A DNA stretch of 63,850 nucleotides, the filler included, from Reticulomyxa filosa (Eukaryota > Protista > Foraminifera): NCBI GenBank assembly GCA_000512085.1. It is 24 parts of 24 records of this genome, joined end to end, with 100 filler letters (N's around TTAATTAATTAA, not from the genome) between each part and the next. Parts side by side here need not be neighbours in the genome. Positions count along the whole stretch, not along the records: positions 44,384 to 50,594 come from ASPP01001150.1; 23 more parts are not named here. The stretch is one strand, 5' to 3'. The position numbers and the translations under genes are program-made. The notes below the pieces were generated by a model. It ran no database searches and was not told the DNA's origin. It worked only from the letters and a program-made list of their open reading frames with translations. The first letter of the stretch is position 1. Each line of letters begins with the position of its first letter. Positions 44,384 through 50,721 of this stretch are shown piece by piece.

Positions 44384-47300
44384 CAAACAGCAGTGGCAGT
44401 AATGAAAAAAGCAGAAAAATTTAATTTGATTGTGTCCGAAGATAAAGACTTTTTTGAAAGACAATCAAAGACACACCACAGATTCCACAATATTAAATTG
44501 TTTGTTCCAAAGCATGATGTATATGTGGAAATGCAAGCCACATTAAAAAGGTTTACAACATTAGAAGGATATACAGAAATTGAAAATCCAAAATTAAGTC
44601 ATCTATTTTATGAACATATTCGAGCGTGGAAGCCAAAGCACACAGAAGAAGAAGATTTAAAGCAAGCAAGTGATGAAATATTAACAAAAATTAATGATGT
44701 TATTTGTGAATGGATAGACGACAGAGGAATACAAAAATTGGCAAATCGTTATAAATCACATTTGGATATTGGAATATTGAAACCACCACAACTGTCCAAA
44801 AATGAATTAGAAATTAACGATAATGTGTCGTTGAAAATGGCACAATTTGTATATGAACAATTATGTACATTTACTCCAGAGAAAATAAAAGGAAAGACTA
44901 TTTATGTGATTTTATATGAATACTATAAAAGATATATCATTGGAGATAAAAATCCAGCAAGTTGCGCTGATTTTGCATTACAATTACAAGAATCAAGGAA
45001 ACAAGAAATGGAAGAAGATATCACAATATCACAAGCACTGGAAACGTATATTCCATTACAAGCAAATAAGTACCCACATGTGGATGGTGAAGAGAATGAA
45101 AAAAATGACACATTTGATTGTCATCAACATGCCATTGAATTTTTAGAGGGAAAAGAAGCATCAGAAGAAAAAAAGATTGAGCAACAAGAACAAAAAAGAA
45201 AAGTAATGATAATACAAGGGAAATCAGGATCAGGAAAAAGTATATTTTGTCGTCATTTGGAAGAGACATTATGGAATAATTATATAAATAATTCAAAACA
45301 GCCTATTCCTGTTTATATATCCTTTCCAAAGATTTATCATTTAAATAATGAAAAAGATATCATTTTACAAGCTTTACAAGGTAAACATATCAGTAAGGAG
45401 AGTATGGATGCAATTCGTGAAAAAGTGTCATTTGTATTCATCATGGATGGTTTTGATGAAATATTTGATAAATATAATCAAAGTGATAACAATGACCAAT
45501 ATTTCTATGATCGTTTCCATTTGAATAAATGGAATGCAAAAGTGGTTGTCACTTGTAGAAGTAAAGCATTAAATGATGAAGATATTAAGACTACTTTAAT
45601 CGGTTTGAATCAAAGTCAAATTATAGCAACACCAATGATGTATTTATGGCCATTTACAAAACAACAAATTCATAGTTATATTGAAAAATTTGCAATGAAA
45701 TTTAAAAATAAGAATAACAATGATTGGACACCTAAAAAATATGAAGAAACGCTGAACAATTATCCAAATCTACAGAAAATGATAGAAGAGCCATTTCTTC
45801 TTCAACTCATTTTAACTGTGCTGCCATCATTGGTGAAACAATATGGTACAGGAAGCAGGATTTCAAAAGTACAAGTGTATGAAGTATTCAATGATCAATG
45901 GATTGATATTCATAGTCAAAATATTGTTTCTAAATTAGCAGAATTAAGAATACAAATGAATATCAACAAAATCAAATCTACATTAAAAAAATATTGTCTT
46001 GATTTGGCATTTGATATGTTTCATCAAGGAAATCAAGTTGCTGTTGAACCAGAATCTCAATATGAAAATAATAATGATGGTAGTAACATTTGGAGTAAAT
46101 TAGATTCAGAAATGGAAAACGATAATAAAAGTAATATGGATGAAAAAATAGAAATAAAAAAGAACAATGATACTTATGTTTCAAAAACATCAGATGTATG
46201 GGAACAATACTTTGACGGTGACAATGTCGCGAAGTATGTATTGAGGAGAGTTGGTGATAATAAATATCAATTTTTACATAAATCATGTCAAGAATATTAT
46301 GCCGCACAAAAAGTAGTAATTGATATTCTTTCATGGAAACCTAATATTATTACTGTTGATAATAACCAATTTCAACAACAATTTAAATCAAATGTTCGAC
46401 AATTTTCCATTAATCGTAAATTACTGAATGAAGAATTGGGAATTATTCAATTTATTGCAGAGAGAATACATGATAATAATCCAATATTTGTAAATTTAAA
46501 ATCAAGGTTATTTCGAATCATTGAATCATCAAAAAATAATGAAAATGTTAGTATTGCAGCAGCAAATGCGATCACTATACTCAATTCAGCAAATGTGAAT
46601 ATGCATTACAAAGATTGGAGTAATATAAACATTCCTTATGCAATTTTAGATCATGCATTTCTTGAAGGAACTAATTTTAGTAATGCAAATTTGGATCATG
46701 TGCATTTTCATCAAGCTTGCTTAACCAAGGTTAATTTCACAAATGCATCGATGAATGATATTTACTTTGGAGAATATGCATATTTAGAAGGACATTCAAA
46801 AGGAGTAATAGGAATTCAATTTTCACCAGATAAAACAAAAATATTATCTTATTCAGAGGATCACACAATTCGAATATGGGATACATCATCAAGAAAACAA
46901 CTTCACATACTAGAGGGATATTCAAATAGAATAAGTAGAGTTCGATTTTCACACGATGGTTCCAAGATTGTATCATGTTTATCAGATAAGACGATTCGAA
47001 TATGGGATATATTTTCAGGTCAACAAATTCAACTGTTGGAAGGACATTCAGGTTTTGTGAATTCAATAGAATTTTCATCAGATGACTCTAAGATTGTATC
47101 CTGTTCACAGGACAAAACTGTTCGAATATGGAATGTATCATATGGAAAACAAATTCAATTATTAAGTGGACATTCACATTCCGTAATGAGTGCGAAATTT
47201 TCACCAGATAATTCTAAAATTGCCTCATGTTCAGAAGATAGATCCATTCGAATATGGGATGTATTTTCTGGAACGCAAATTTTATTGTTAAAAGGGCACA

Positions 47301-48934
47301 AAAGTAAGGTACATAAAGTGCAATTTATATTCAATGGATCAAAGATTATATCATACTCAATGGATAAAACTATTCGAATATGGGATACATTATCAGGTCA
47401 ACAACTTCAATTATTGGAAGGACATACAAGTGATATAAATGGAATTCAATTATCACCAAATAGTTCAAATATCTTATCCTATTCATGGGATAAAACAATA
47501 CGAATATGGGATTTGCTGTCTGGAAAACAACTGCACGTTCTAGAAGGGCATCCAGATGCTGTGCATACAGCAAAATTTTCATTTGATGGTTTTAGGATTG
47601 TATCTGGTTCAGGGGATGGTACAATTCGACTATGGGATGTATTATCAGGCAAACAGATTCAAGTATTAGAAGGATATTCATCTTCTATATGTGGTGTGGA
47701 ATTTTTTCCAAATGAATCCAAAATTTTGTCATGTTCAGATGATGGTGCTATTCGAATATGGGATATATCTTTAGAAAGAAAAATTCAGTTAACAGAAGGG
47801 TATGTAGATATTATAACAGCAGTAACATTTTCTCTTGATGGTTCTAAAATGGTATCATGTTCTAAAGATAAAACAATACGATTGTGGGATGTACAATCAG
47901 GAAAACAAATTCATGTATCTGAATTTCATTCAGATATGGATAATGTATTATTTTCACCAGATGGTTTTAAAATTATATTATATTCAAATGGAAACACAAT
48001 CCAAATATGGGATGTATTATCAGGAAAACAACTTCAATTATTGGAAGGACATTCAAAGTGGCTAAGAACAGTGCAATTTTCATCAGATGGTTCCAAACTT
48101 GTGTCATGTTCAGATGATAAAACAATTCGAATATGGGATGTATCATCAGGAAGACAAATTCAATTATTAAATGGTCATTCTAGTTCTGTAACTAATGCAA
48201 AATTTTTGCCAGATGGACATAAGATTATATCTTGTTCAATAGATTTTACAATTAGATTGTGGAATGCGTTATCTGGTAAACAAATTCAGATATTTAAAGG
48301 ACATAAAGATTATATACATATTCTACAACTTTCACCAGATGGTTCTAATTTTTTGTCATATTCATTGGATGATACTATTCGAGTATGGGATATATCATCT
48401 GGAAAACAACTTTTTTCATACGAAATAAGTGAAAATGTGTATGAAGCAATATATTCTCCAGACGGTACTACAATTGCATTTTGTTCAGATGATAAGACAA
48501 TTCAATTGTGGAATGTATTGACAAGAAAACAAATCCAGATATTAAAAGGACATTCTGATGCTGTATATGGAATACAATTTGTATTGGATGGTTCTAAAAT
48601 TATTTCATATTCAAGAGACAAAACGATTCGAATATGGGATATTTCTTCAGGTAAACAAATTCAGGTATTAGAAGGACATAATGAATTTGTTAATCACATT
48701 CATTTATCACCCGATGGTTCAAAACTAGTGTCATGTTCAGAGGATAAAACAATTCGATTATGGGGTAGTAATAATGGTAAAATTGTTGATGTAACTGAGA
48801 CAAGTGTGGTGGATTTTATTTGGAGAGTAGGTATTCAAAGTGGTTTATCAATGAAAGACAGTATGTGGAAAGATACAAAAGGTTTGAAAGATGGACAAAT
48901 AATGCTTGTAAAACAACGTGGTGGAATATTTTGA
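44384..48934 (+). CDS. NLR-like STAND protein: putative RelA/SpoT-like NTase, NACHT, pentapeptide repeats, 16 WD40 repeats (5'-truncated, intronless)
   Basis: Frame open from the contig edge. Walker A GKSGSGKS, Walker B FIMDGFDE, VVTCR, PFLL, FLHKSCQEYYAA, AAANAITIL plus pentapeptides, 16 GH..WD repeats. Confidence refers to NACHT-WD40; the NTase call is weaker. Confidence 0.93.
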   Translation, partial: QTAVAVMKKAEKFNLIVSEDKDFFERQSKTHHRFHNIKLFVPKHDVYVEMQATLKRFTTLEGYTEIENPKLSHLFYEHIRAWKPKHTEEEDLKQASDEILTKINDVICEWIDDRGIQKLANRYKSHLDIGILKPPQLSKNELEINDNVSLKMAQFVYEQLCTFTPEKIKGKTIYVILYEYYKRYIIGDKNPASCADFALQLQESRKQEMEEDITISQALETYIPLQANKYPHVDGEENEKNDTFDCHQHAIEFLEGKEASEEKKIEQQEQKRKVMIIQGKSGSGKSIFCRHLEETLWNNYINNSKQPIPVYISFPKIYHLNNEKDIILQALQGKHISKESMDAIREKVSFVFIMDGFDEIFDKYNQSDNNDQYFYDRFHLNKWNAKVVVTCRSKALNDEDIKTTLIGLNQSQIIATPMMYLWPFTKQQIHSYIEKFAMKFKNKNNNDWTPKKYEETLNNYPNLQKMIEEPFLLQLILTVLPSLVKQYGTGSRISKVQVYEVFNDQWIDIHSQNIVSKLAELRIQMNINKIKSTLKKYCLDLAFDMFHQGNQVAVEPESQYENNNDGSNIWSKLDSEMENDNKSNMDEKIEIKKNNDTYVSKTSDVWEQYFDGDNVAKYVLRRVGDNKYQFLHKSCQEYYAAQKVVIDILSWKPNIITVDNNQFQQQFKSNVRQFSINRKLLNEELGIIQFIAERIHDNNPIFVNLKSRLFRIIESSKNNENVSIAAANAITILNSANVNMHYKDWSNINIPYAILDHAFLEGTNFSNANLDHVHFHQACLTKVNFTNASMNDIYFGEYAYLEGHSKGVIGIQFSPDKTKILSYSEDHTIRIWDTSSRKQLHILEGYSNRISRVRFSHDGSKIVSCLSDKTIRIWDIFSGQQIQLLEGHSGFVNSIEFSSDDSKIVSCSQDKTVRIWNVSYGKQIQLLSGHSHSVMSAKFSPDNSKIASCSEDRSIRIWDVFSGTQILLLKGHKSKVHKVQFIFNGSKIISYSMDKTIRIWDTLSGQQLQLLEGHTSDINGIQLSPNSSNILSYSWDKTIRIWDLLSGKQLHVLEGHPDAVHTAKFSFDGFRIVSGSGDGTIRLWDVLSGKQIQVLEGYSSSICGVEFFPNESKILSCSDDGAIRIWDISLERKIQLTEGYVDIITAVTFSLDGSKMVSCSKDKTIRLWDVQSGKQIHVSEFHSDMDNVLFSPDGFKIILYSNGNTIQIWDVLSGKQLQLLEGHSKWLRTVQFSSDGSKLVSCSDDKTIRIWDVSSGRQIQLLNGHSSSVTNAKFLPDGHKIISCSIDFTIRLWNALSGKQIQIFKGHKDYIHILQLSPDGSNFLSYSLDDTIRVWDISSGKQLFSYEISENVYEAIYSPDGTTIAFCSDDKTIQLWNVLTRKQIQILKGHSDAVYGIQFVLDGSKIISYSRDKTIRIWDISSGKQIQVLEGHNEFVNHIHLSPDGSKLVSCSEDKTIRLWGSNNGKIVDVTETSVVDFIWRVGIQSGLSMKDSMWKDTKGLKDGQIMLVKQRGGIF

Positions 48935-49409
48935 TAAATACATTTACTCAGTGGCTACATTATTTTTAATTGAGGCAAAAGAAATATACACATAATTTGT
49001 GTCCAAAAAAAAGCATGGAGTAAAAATATAATCTACAAATCTTGTATATTGACCTTACTTGTGCAATATTTTAATCAAAGCTATAGGACGTTGTTTCAAA
49101 ATCAAACACCAGTATTCAACAATAGAAAAAACATTGATTGCACTTGAACATATTTTCTGCATAATTACATTTTTTTAGACGCTTTCTAAAAAATCATAAA
49201 TATTAAAATTTTTGGCTAAAGATTTATAAAAAACATTCATAGAATAATCATTGAATAATTTGTTATTTGTTTTGATTATTAATCTTTCTTTTTATATATT
49301 TTGAAAATACTTAAAAAATGGAAAATTTCATAATTATGAAACCAAAATGAAACTATATTTAAAAAATTGCAAATTAACAGATTTTAATTGTGTTCCTTCA
49401 AAATTTATT

Positions 49410-50075
49410 TCATCTATTGTATTTCATAATTTTATCAAAATCATAAATCCATATTAATTTTATTTGTAAAGCATTTTTTGACTGTTCATTATTTATTATT
49501 TGTTAATCAGTTTCATACAATTTGTTTGTTTCATAAAATAAAAAAATAAACAAATCATTACTAACAGTGAAGGATCACATACACGTACTTTTGTCTTCAT
49601 GTGAGTTAATACTATTGTACTATTATTATATGCTTCTCCAATGATATTACATGATTATATTCTTCGCTCAATATTGCAACACAATTATATAATGGACTGG
49701 GTAAAATGCTTTGAAATTTAGTCTATTTATTTTCTCGAATTAAATACTTGTGCCTGATTTTGAGATAACACTAATAAAAACATCAAAATACCATCCACTA
49801 AACAACAAGATGATGTCATTGATGCGCACTATAATATGCAGTATCCTTGCAAACAAATTGATGAAATTGAAACATATTGTTATCTTCATCATATTCAATT
49901 GATAATATTGTATTTTTATAAAACAACAGTATTTGATATTTGTTTATTTTTTCCTTCATTTATTTTCATCATTTCTTGCCCTTGCGAAGTTTCTGACTTT
50001 GATACAAAGCAATGATAACATGTTTCATTTTTAGTTGATAATCTATATCATAACCAAATCAAAAATGTCCATGTA
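49410..50075 (-). pseudogene. Kelch-repeat gene pseudogene with a C-terminal box; absent from the ORF track
   Basis: YHCFVSKSETSQGQEMMK, LLFYKNTILSIEYDEDNN, INDIILLFSGW, HKYLIRENK*, LPSPLYNCVAILSEE, THMKTKVRV; last exon SKNALQIKLIWIYDFDKIMKYNR-TGA. Confidence 0.7.
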
Positions 50076-50721
50076 AAGTACCGTTTTTATTTTTTAAATC
50101 CCTTTTTAAAAAGGCTAAACTTAAAAACTTCACAACATCAACAACATGGGTAATCGAACTAGCAAAAAACCTCCACCAAATGCAATAACAATACTAAATA
50201 GCAAGAGTTAGCATGAGTCATCAAAATTAGGATAAGATAAAACTTAGAAGATTAAAATACAATATGAACAGTGTTGGAAAGACATTACACGTAGAGTGTT
50301 TATAGAAGATTATTTTATTATTTTACTTGATAGCATCGAGATGCTTTTGTAAACGAGTACCTTTGAAATATTGATATGTAGATACTGTTTTTTAAAAAAA
50401 GATGCAATGAAGAGGAAATGCCAACAATACAGCAATCTGTTTAATTGAGCAAATACTGCAAACTCTGAGTGAAATCAATAACAGAAAAGATATCATACAT
50501 TACAGACAGAAACCTCTTTACAAAGTTATCATGTCATATGTCATACAAAATTATCAAACTTGTGTATTTTACATATAAAGAAAGTGAAAGAACANNNNNN
50601 NNNNNNNNNNNNNNNNNNNNNNNNNNNNNNNNNNNNNNTTAATTAATTAANNNNNNNNNNNNNNNNNNNNNNNNNNNNNNNNNNNNNNNNNNNNTTAAAA
50701 AAAAAAAAAAAAAAAAAAAAG

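Follow-up and report, generated by a model that had tools for sequence, protein, structure and literature searches.

A predicted Apk1/Tas1-like synthetase domain heads an expanded family of NLR-like NACHT proteins in the foraminiferan Reticulomyxa filosa

NLR-like proteins in which a RelA_SpoT domain precedes a NACHT module and WD40 repeats were annotated in fungi in 2014, for instance in Gaeumannomyces graminis (Dyrka et al. 2014, PMC4986451), and 17 cases of RelA_SpoT NLRs are recorded for Sordariales (PMC12258605). In bacteria, 'Alarmone synthetases' are named among the N-terminal effectors of NACHT proteins by Kibby et al. (bioRxiv 10.1101/2022.07.19.500537), who also propose repeated transfer from intracellular bacteria to eukaryotes; the available text mentions no rhizarian or Reticulomyxa case. 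Given the fungal annotation of 2014 and the bacterial effector list of 2022, the RSH-NACHT-WD40 architecture itself is not new. The statement in an earlier note that no such architecture was known to be characterised in a eukaryote thus holds for characterisation, the fungal records being annotation only, but not for the architecture. No biochemical characterisation of fungal or R. filosa RelA_SpoT NLRs, or of bacterial alarmone-synthetase NACHT proteins, was found in the literature searched. To our knowledge, little is known about immunity in Rhizaria. What is new is that the family has expanded in a rhizarian, that it belongs to an Apk1-like subfamily, and that its module also occurs on bacterial-looking contigs and in a gene resembling a transmembrane receptor.

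The window analysed is a stretch of 63,850 nucleotides of R. filosa DNA, in which one contig (ASPP01001150.1) begins at position 44384. A reading frame is open from this contig edge to a TGA at 48932-48934, and encodes, in this order, the C-terminal half of an RSH synthetase, a helical linker, a NACHT module, pentapeptide repeats and 16 WD40 repeats. The features are as follows.

44384-48934, plus strand: open reading frame of the RSH-NACHT-pentapeptide-WD40 protein P0002 (1516 aa plus stop; truncated at the 5′ end, where the contig begins)
44384-44668, plus strand: RSH synthetase domain, C-terminal half, predicted Apk1/Tas1-like (aa 1-95, equivalent to residues 218-312 of P0003; from HMM match, dN/dS and paralogue model)
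44465-44491, plus strand: remodelled G-loop (Syn3), SKTHHRFHN; Apk1-like proteins have GY(R/S)(D/G)xN, and the acceptor-stacking Tyr is His here
44525-44536, plus strand: Syn4, VEMQ; Glu aligns with Apk1 E382 and Gln with the Apk1 Gln two residues on (PMC12691689)
44597-44623, plus strand: HxxYExxR helix (SHLFYEHIR), common to the Apk1-like family by alignment
44669-45088, plus strand: linker domain joining the enzyme to the NACHT; looks helical on inspection and ends in LETYIPLQAN (45038-45067)
45203-46297, plus strand: NACHT NTPase module in which Walker A/B, sensor-1 and the winged-helix His motif are all intact (Pfam NACHT, E=2.7e-11)
45218-45241, 45431-45460, 45542-45562 and 46271-46297, plus strand: NACHT motifs Walker A, Walker B, sensor-1 and winged-helix FLHKSCQEY, respectively
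46595-46774, plus strand: pentapeptide repeats (Pfam PF00805, E=1.9e-8; PF13599)
46787-48766, plus strand: 16 WD40 repeats of 42 aa each (126-bp period), candidate sensor, with hypervariable positions 6, 8, 9 and 24 in each repeat

The motifs from which a RelA/SpoT-like domain had been proposed, EDKDFF (44438-44455), SKTHHRFHN, VEMQ and SHLFYEHIR, all lie in frame from 44384. Comparison with full-length paralogues confirms that the contig edge removes the domain's first half, and the alignment that the GY motif reads HH in P0002. The NLR-like layout claimed for the protein also stands, with the effector-NACHT-repeat order, Walker A/B, sensor-1 and the winged-helix His all preserved. The linker, which is also present in metagenomic relatives, is a candidate autoinhibitory or coupling element. 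A Cryptomeria match to it (P0104) spans nothing but low-complexity sequence and was judged to be a chance hit.

The assembly contains at least 60 paralogues. Full-length members carry the Syn1 and Syn2 motifs that the P0002 fragment lacks and, upstream of the RSH domain, a Cys-rich domain whose model is mostly beta (pLDDT 92). A structural search of the PDB with this model gave no match (best Z 5.8; Foldseek E>0.2), leaving its assignment to a known Zn-finger or beta-tent unsupported. P0001 has two RSH copies, the second of them degenerate. In P0059 the same Cys-rich and RSH module lies behind a signal peptide, a repeat ectodomain and a transmembrane helix, as expected if the effector is swappable. 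The RSH region of P0109 retrieved itself only in a homologue search and nothing in a PDB search. The four hypervariable WD40 positions of P0002 each hold 10-12 different residues across the 16 repeats, and median dN/dS is highest for WD40 (0.46), followed by NACHT (0.32) and the RSH C-half (0.05), WD40 diversification being read from residue variability and dN/dS. The RSH C-half (dN/dS 0.03-0.13 against eight paralogues) is the most constrained part of the protein. The family thus shows the lineage-specific expansion and diversifying sensor repeats of the NLR type.

The AF2 model of the full RSH domain (∼175 aa) of a paralogue (pLDDT 86) has the Pol-beta-like SYNTH fold of RSH synthetases, and every one of the 50 best Foldseek rows and the 10 best VIA rows obtained with it was an RSH protein. 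The nucleotidyltransferase fold foreseen in the earlier note is thereby borne out, and that the P0002 family's N-terminal domain adopts an RSH fold is virtually certain. Foldseek placed Tas1 first (E=1.1e-8, TM 0.68), ahead of RelP (3e-6) and CapRel (5e-5). VIA-align gave Z 13-14 for RelP, Rel and Tas1 alike and 12.0 for CapRel, with Tas1 having the longest alignment (157 aa), the joint-lowest rmsd (3.0) and the highest identity (20%). In agreement with this, Tas1 (6OX6) was the only significant sequence match of a 60-domain profile against the PDB (E=3e-4). HH-suite probabilities were 95-99% against Apk1-like profiles and 0.9% against a two-sequence RelA/SpoT profile, and the P0002 N-terminal fragment scored 16 bits on an HMM of Apk1-like bacterial and phage RSH domains (best of 2000 shuffles, 12.0), this bacterial comparison set having been picked by an N-half motif, a selection that does not apply to the PDB profile search or to Foldseek. 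On the same HMM, RelA (42 bits) and SpoT (39 bits) outscored the Reticulomyxa rows (30-33) when the C-half was used alone, and it is therefore from the N-half and the fold that the affinity to Tas1 derives. Pfam RelA_SpoT (PF04607) matched full-length paralogues with E-values from 5.7e-7 (P0001) to 7.5e-3; the two-copy P0001 reached 30.2 bits against a cut-off of 27, single-copy paralogues stayed below it (17-21), and the truncated N-terminus of P0002 alone gave no Pfam match.

The upstream RxK and DxxxxR sought in the earlier note have counterparts in the paralogues, but Syn1 reads K-x3-R-x2-E-K ... D-Y-x-G-D and DxxR stands for DxxxxR. The broad Apk1/Tas1-like signature, K-x3-R-x2-[EQ]-K-x3-DYxGD...DxxR-T-I and HxxYE, is present. 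In place of RxK...S, DxxxxR and KxNGYxSxH, the pattern of the (p)ppGpp synthetases RelA, SpoT, RelP and RelQ, the family has K-x3-R, DxxR and HHRFHN. It also departs from the strict Apk1/Apk2 (p)ppApp synthetases, in that its G-loop reads His-His/Tyr where those have Gly-Tyr, and that Reticulomyxa-like sequences fall into a separate clade on a long branch (SH-aLRT 99) and not into the compact one with the closest relatives of Tas1, in a tree from a quick, unfinished search whose unresolved backbone fixes neither donor nor direction of transfer. Together, sequence and model indicate that the domain belongs to the broad Apk1/Tas1-like alarmone synthetase group. The RelA/SpoT likeness first proposed thus holds for the fold, but the closest characterised relatives are toxic or exported Apk1/Tas1-like enzymes and not housekeeping (p)ppGpp enzymes.

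Residues for donor ATP and Mg are 90-98% conserved in the 60-row alignment (K43 59, R47 55, K51 58, D65 59, R68 58, N115 54, E128 59 and Q130 58 of 60). The Mg-binding Asp of Syn2, the catalytic ExQ of Syn4 and the basic donor-ATP residues of Syn1 are thus all in place, Syn1 and Syn2 being read from paralogues; both the ExQ conservation (E in 59, Q in 58) and the upstream Asp motif (D in 59) on which the initial proposal depended were found. By alignment, R68, N115 and E128 correspond to R330, N370 and E382 of Apk1, named as ATP-binding (PMC12691689; numbering from there and from counting on the close Pseudomonas homologue L053). At the G-loop position of the acceptor-binding Tyr, 49 rows have His and 9 have Tyr, which makes the product uncertain. 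Substitution of this Tyr abolishes or impairs toxSAS toxicity (PMC7229694, PMC11782079). Nor does the family fix the product, because Apk1 homologues include the (p)ppGpp makers VpEAS and AaEAS (PMC12691689).

Near-complete homologues of the module were found on bacterial-looking metagenome contigs, in one case next to recA. Some environmental copies are interrupted by stops. PADLOC and NCBIfam searches with P0003 matched no model, tblastn of the RSH domain or NACHT against phages and plasmids gave nothing significant, and a viral-contig scan with the family alignment gave no match.

The explanation we favour, with a probability of roughly 0.4, is that the gene is nuclear and belongs to an NLR-like receptor family expanded in this lineage, and that the receptor sets free a toxic pyrophosphotransferase, which most likely drains ATP. 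The WD40 propellers would bind a non-self or altered-self ligand through their hypervariable surface positions; the intact NACHT, by analogy with STAND biology, would switch nucleotide state and assemble; assembly would free or cluster the RSH synthetase; and the enzyme, whose donor site is conserved, would transfer ATP pyrophosphate to a 3′-OH, most likely of ADP or ATP, yielding (p)ppApp. The resulting ATP drain may kill or shut down the affected part of the cell. Of its elements, an NLR-type role in non-self recognition is probable and catalytic activity of the RSH domain is likely, while an adenosine-nucleotide acceptor would be about an even bet were the enzyme active. Because the closest characterised relatives are toxic and exported Apk1/Tas1-like synthetases, a toxic effector is no less likely than a second messenger. 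Counting against the favoured reading are the His in place of the G-loop Tyr, the separate long-branch clade, the (p)ppGpp makers among Apk1 homologues and the C-half scores; the symbiont of R. filosa and the reuse of the module in P0059 count for it.

The altered G-loop bears on two alternatives. Its Gly-Tyr to His-His change in most copies, the degenerate second copy of P0001, and the tight control that dozens of constitutively present toxin domains would need where no immunity partner is seen all fit a dead or nucleotide-binding pseudo-enzyme that acts as an adaptor, or as an integrated decoy to which bacterial effectors or alarmones bind, and signals through the Cys-rich or a UBA-like N-terminus. 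The 92-98% conservation of the Mg-binding Asp, the catalytic Glu/Gln and the donor-phosphate basic residues, and a purifying selection stronger than elsewhere in the protein, where a decoy would be expected to diversify, make this unlikely. The same loop is nearly invariant, which suggests a different acceptor: an active NLR effector could modify an RNA 3′ end, such as the tRNA CCA end, and arrest translation like CapRel or FaRel2. CapRel is a known case of a sensor fused to a toxSAS (PMC11782079; Z 12.0) and the Cys-rich domain could aid substrate binding; against this, Tas1 is well ahead of CapRel by sequence and Foldseek (E 1e-8 versus 5e-5) and the DYxGD signature belongs to the Apk1-like group, so that we give it a small chance.

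The chance is just as small that (p)ppGpp or another nucleotide serves as second messenger for a separate receptor, the signalling version of the earlier note, also proposed for fungal NLRs (PMC4986451), or manipulates bacterial prey or symbionts. (p)ppGpp is indeed the product of some Apk1 homologues (PMC12691689), RelP and Rel are not told apart from Tas1 by VIA-align, and a symbiont is present in R. filosa, but the guanine-contacting KxNGYxSxH of RelA is not kept and no receptor or hydrolase gene is evident among called neighbours, mostly unannotated, at eight paralogue loci. Finally, R. filosa was sequenced together with a Rickettsiales symbiont and whole-module homologues lie on bacterial-looking contigs, one adjoining recA; that the contig is itself bacterial, from symbiont or contaminant, is nevertheless very improbable given at least 60 paralogues in one assembly, 1.6 kb of gene-free downstream DNA at 17-28% GC, and paralogues adjoining intron-containing papain-family and protein-kinase genes.

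R. filosa hosts a Midichloriaceae symbiont (PMC10847448). It is possible, if somewhat doubtful, that the complete Cys-rich, Apk1-like synthetase and NACHT module was taken from or exchanged with an intracellular bacterium and expanded into cytosolic NLR-like and transmembrane receptors, whose output on non-self detection would be an adenosine alarmone, or else a new pyrophosphorylated compound determined by the His-rich G-loop. If so, eukaryotic innate immunity would have an alarmone-based cell-death output parallel to the TIR NADases. The near-complete homologues on bacterial-looking contigs offer a concrete case for symbiont-host exchange of NLR modules. If the enzyme is active, pyrophosphotransfer, whether it depletes ATP, modifies RNA 3′ ends or yields a new nucleotide, would become a further output of NLR-like immunity in eukaryotes. 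The family provides natural variants by the dozen in which the donor site is intact and strongly constrained, and the domain is small enough for direct assay.

With the fungal RelA_SpoT NLRs the family shares the three-part architecture in a eukaryote, with RelA_SpoT listed as an N-terminal effector class, but these make up <1% of annotated N-termini in fungi, and the Cys-rich domain and pentapeptide repeats are extra in R. filosa. No fungal protein was seen among the named homologue matches, which suggests that the two architectures may have been assembled independently. Apk1/Tas1, Apk2 and the exported SaEAS/VpEAS (PMC10083569, PMC12691689) have the same fold and the K-x3-R-x2-[EQ]-K, DYxGD, DxxR, ExQ and HxxYE motifs. 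They differ in identity (∼20%), in clade, in a G-loop of GYSGVN/GYRDxN and in fusion to PAAR, MuF or a signal peptide instead of a NACHT, and no Tis1-like immunity gene was seen in R. filosa; the supplements of PMC12691689 mention neither Reticulomyxa nor NACHT. CapRel (PMC11782079) likewise combines an immune sensor with a toxic RSH enzyme on a single chain, but its sensor is a pseudo-zinc-finger blocking the donor site and its substrate tRNA, whereas R. filosa has a STAND ATPase and WD40 propellers. Bacterial NACHT proteins (bioRxiv 10.1101/2022.07.19.500537) share enzymatic effectors and beta-propeller and pentapeptide sensors. Podospora HET-E/HET-D (HNWD family) have a HET domain as effector, but show the same effector-NACHT-WD40 layout and likewise have highly similar 42-aa repeats with a few hypervariable positions.

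All motifs that the earlier note had quoted from P0002, the 5'-truncated RSH-NACHT-pentapeptide-WD40 protein of the window, were found in its frame at the positions assigned to them there. The frame is organized as follows.

Features of P0002
44384 to TGA at 48932-48934, plus strand: long open frame, within piece 44384-50594 and open from its first base
Downstream of the RSH fragment, plus strand: intact NACHT (Pfam E=2.7e-11)
Beyond the RSH fragment, plus strand: pentapeptide repeats (Pfam E=1.9e-8)
C-terminal region, plus strand: 16 WD40 repeats (period 126 bp)

The 1.6 kb following the stop codon are AT-rich and gene-free. Residues 1-130 or 1-272 of P0002 gave no match when searched alone against Pfam; the catalytic N-terminal half of the enzyme in this gene lies past the contig edge and is putatively that of the paralogues, the closest having 90% identity in the region common to both.

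A search with residues 1-270 returned the protein itself and 60 others (54-91% identity), every one named Reticulomyxa filosa, a freshwater foraminiferan, and additional family fragments surfaced in further homologue searches. Upstream of the point where the contig of P0002 begins, full-length paralogues add a short helical segment (UBA-like by inspection) as well as a Cys-rich domain, and they supply the enzyme's first half, with K-x3-R-x2-E-K, D-Y-x-G-D and D-[IV]-G-R-F-T. Of the upstream motifs that the earlier note had proposed to look for, the catalytic Asp motif is present in paralogues (D-[IV]-G-R-F-T, with DxxR instead of DxxxxR), and Syn1 reads K-x3-R-x2-E-K instead of RxK. Strict matches to all four motif patterns were obtained for 41 of the 61 proteins, several of the remaining ones being truncated. 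Enzyme and Walker A share one frame in all eight paralogue loci fetched (L165-L172); the frame is unbroken through the WD40 end in three, and a later annotated intron, stop or frameshift is present in five. The breaks in these five fall after the start of NACHT, where annotated introns bridge them, and could represent genuine introns, copies in decay or errors of assembly. Intron-containing papain-family and kinase genes are neighbours at one locus, and at L172 more WD40 and NACHT-HEAT genes adjoin, hinting at receptor clusters. The RSH-NACHT family is nuclear and expanded in R. filosa, and it is highly improbable that the contig of P0002 is contamination. One relative, P0001 (RFI_08856), carries two tandem Cys-rich+RSH units (residues 125-298 and 507-679) and no WD40 domain; its first unit is degenerate, with DYxGD lost and the G-loop altered.

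The N-terminal enzyme domain is an RSH synthetase, as the earlier proposal of a RelA/SpoT-like nucleotidyltransferase had it. PF04607 matched paralogues with E=5.7e-7 (P0001, above the gathering cut-off) to 7.5e-3, single-copy paralogues scoring below that cut-off, and with an AlphaFold2 model of residues 139-312 of the paralogue P0003 (mean pLDDT 86) all of the best 50 Foldseek rows were RSH proteins, led by the toxic (p)ppApp synthetase Tas1 (6OX6; E=1.1e-8, TM 0.68) with RelP behind (3.1e-6). VIA-align gave Z scores of 14.2 for B. subtilis SAS2, 13.7 for Rel, 13.4 for Tas1 (157 aligned residues, rmsd 3.0, 20% identity) and 12.0 for CapRel, and at most 8.9 for other Pol-beta enzymes. Tas1 was also the sole significant match in a sequence-profile search of the PDB (E=3e-4). 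Searches of predicted-structure libraries yielded a phage protein named Tas1 besides uncharacterised clusters from proteobacteria, phages, giant viruses and diatoms, those of the last two mostly unannotated. Large phage polyproteins commonly contain Apk1-like RSH domains (viral contigs L057-L162).

For subgroup assignment we used about 150 bacterial and phage proteins picked by a degenerate DNA pattern for K-x3-R-x2-[EQ]-K-x3-[DE]-Y-x-G-D, including PAAR-Tas1-like Pseudomonas proteins (37 of 44 residues identical to a Tas1 stretch). The Reticulomyxa domain aligned end to end with this set (HH probability 95-99%). Since the set was selected by motif, the motif-less P0002 fragment was tested separately; it scored 16 bits against an Apk1-like HMM, exceeding 2000 shuffles. 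With the C-half only, RelA and SpoT outscore Reticulomyxa on this HMM, so the affinity to Tas1 is carried by the N-half and the unbiased PDB searches. In a quick tree, whose backbone is without resolution, Reticulomyxa groups with its environmental relatives in a separate long-branch clade (SH-aLRT 99), which falls outside that of close Tas1 relatives (SH-aLRT 100). The Reticulomyxa RSH is a member of the broad Apk1-like group and not of a characterised subfamily.

Donor-side residues K43, R47, K51, D65, R68, N115, E128 and Q130 (numbering of RSH alignment A2) are 90-98% conserved over 60 rows, the ExQ motif, E128 and Q130, thus being conserved among paralogues as anticipated. By counting, R68, N115 and E128 align with Apk1 R330, N370 and E382, which are named as ATP-binding (PMC12691689). 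The G-loop reads GYRD in 70 and GYSG in 36 proteins of the comparison set; in the 60 rows of this family an invariant His is followed by His (49) or Tyr (9). Substitution of the G-loop Tyr abolishes toxSAS toxicity (PMC7229694), and Phe at that position already impairs FaRel2 (PMC11782079). That this Tyr is mostly His is the main reason for doubt over activity and product. Median pairwise NG86 dN/dS among nine paralogues was lowest for the RSH C-half (0.05), followed by the N-half (0.15), linker (0.19), Cys-rich domain (0.23), NACHT (0.32) and WD40 (0.46), values to be read with dS near 1, non-independent pairs and possibly misregistered WD40 repeats. The low value of the C-half counts against a dead domain, and we consider it rather unlikely that the RSH domain is a pseudo-enzyme.

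The scaffold of the 16 WD40 repeats is conserved and positions 6, 8, 9 and 24 carry 10-12 different residues, a variability typical of the ligand face of HET-E-type propellers. Positive selection has been described in such repeats (Dyrka et al., PMC4986451). In the most likely mechanism, ligand binding by the propeller would switch NACHT, which in turn may release or cluster the RSH enzyme. Since Tas1 is active as a monomer (PMC11782079), relief of autoinhibition is no less plausible than oligomerisation. With ATP as pyrophosphate donor, the enzyme would then pyrophosphorylate a 3'-OH group, arresting or killing the affected cytoplasm. By analogy with the nearest solved relative the acceptor may be ADP/ATP, whose conversion kills via ATP depletion (PMC8118318, PMC12691689). 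Apk1 homologues VpEAS and AaEAS produce (p)ppGpp, and synthesis of this or another signalling nucleotide is, to our judgement, improbable for the Reticulomyxa effector; pyrophosphorylation of tRNA, the target of CapRel and FaRel2, is improbable to the same degree.

The module also occurs outside this gene:

L176:4946-7999 (RFI contig ASPP01007525.1): P0059, a receptor-like transmembrane version ending near the contig edge
L174:786-2505; L175; L173:60-1580; L002: environmental module copies on metagenome contigs, each interrupted by in-frame stops
L001:2745-6257: P0109, a bacterial-looking signal peptide-ankyrin-RSH-NACHT protein adjoining a split transposase-like gene

P0059 consists of a signal peptide, a repeat ectodomain (49% GC; 27-31% in the contig upstream), a TM helix, a coiled coil and the same Cys-rich+RSH module. 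The environmental copies are 32-35% identical over the full Cys-rich/RSH/linker/NACHT-start module; that of L174/L175 lies immediately 3' of recA and opens, in L174, with a signal-peptide-like stretch. All three stops examined, of which L174 holds two and L173 one, are TAG with homology resuming in the same frame, and the in-frame stops reflect either pseudogenes or TAG recoding. The P0109 NACHT region is 30% identical to that of P0002 over 500 aa, and the P0109 G-loop, HYRDY, stands midway between those of the Apk1-like group and of Reticulomyxa. R. filosa hosts a Midichloriaceae symbiont (PMC10847448), and module exchange with intracellular bacteria is plausible. The Cys-rich domain, taken from paralogue P0003 (residues 34-140, alignment A3) and lying outside the contig of P0002, reads GxNLxGxC...C...W.N.G...CPxC. 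Its model is mostly beta (pLDDT 92) and gave no match in a PDB fold search; the nearest Atlas clusters (0.93) are unnamed and mostly rotifer, one being partly ubiquitin-fused.

A literature search for Reticulomyxa together with NACHT found no paper, and among titles joining ppApp with NLR none concerned an RSH-NLR fusion. RelA_SpoT is one of 12 classes of fungal NLR N-termini, with RelA_SpoT-NACHT-WD40 in Gaeumannomyces (PMC4986451) and 17 cases in Sordariales (PMC12258605), and bacterial NACHT effectors include alarmone synthetases (bioRxiv 10.1101/2022.07.19.500537). Because of these listings the architecture, of which the earlier note knew no characterised case in a eukaryote, is already known by annotation. 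New are the large rhizarian expansion, the Apk1-like instead of canonical subfamily, the conserved His-rich G-loop, the partner domain without assignment, and the further use of this module by a TM receptor and on bacterial-looking contigs.
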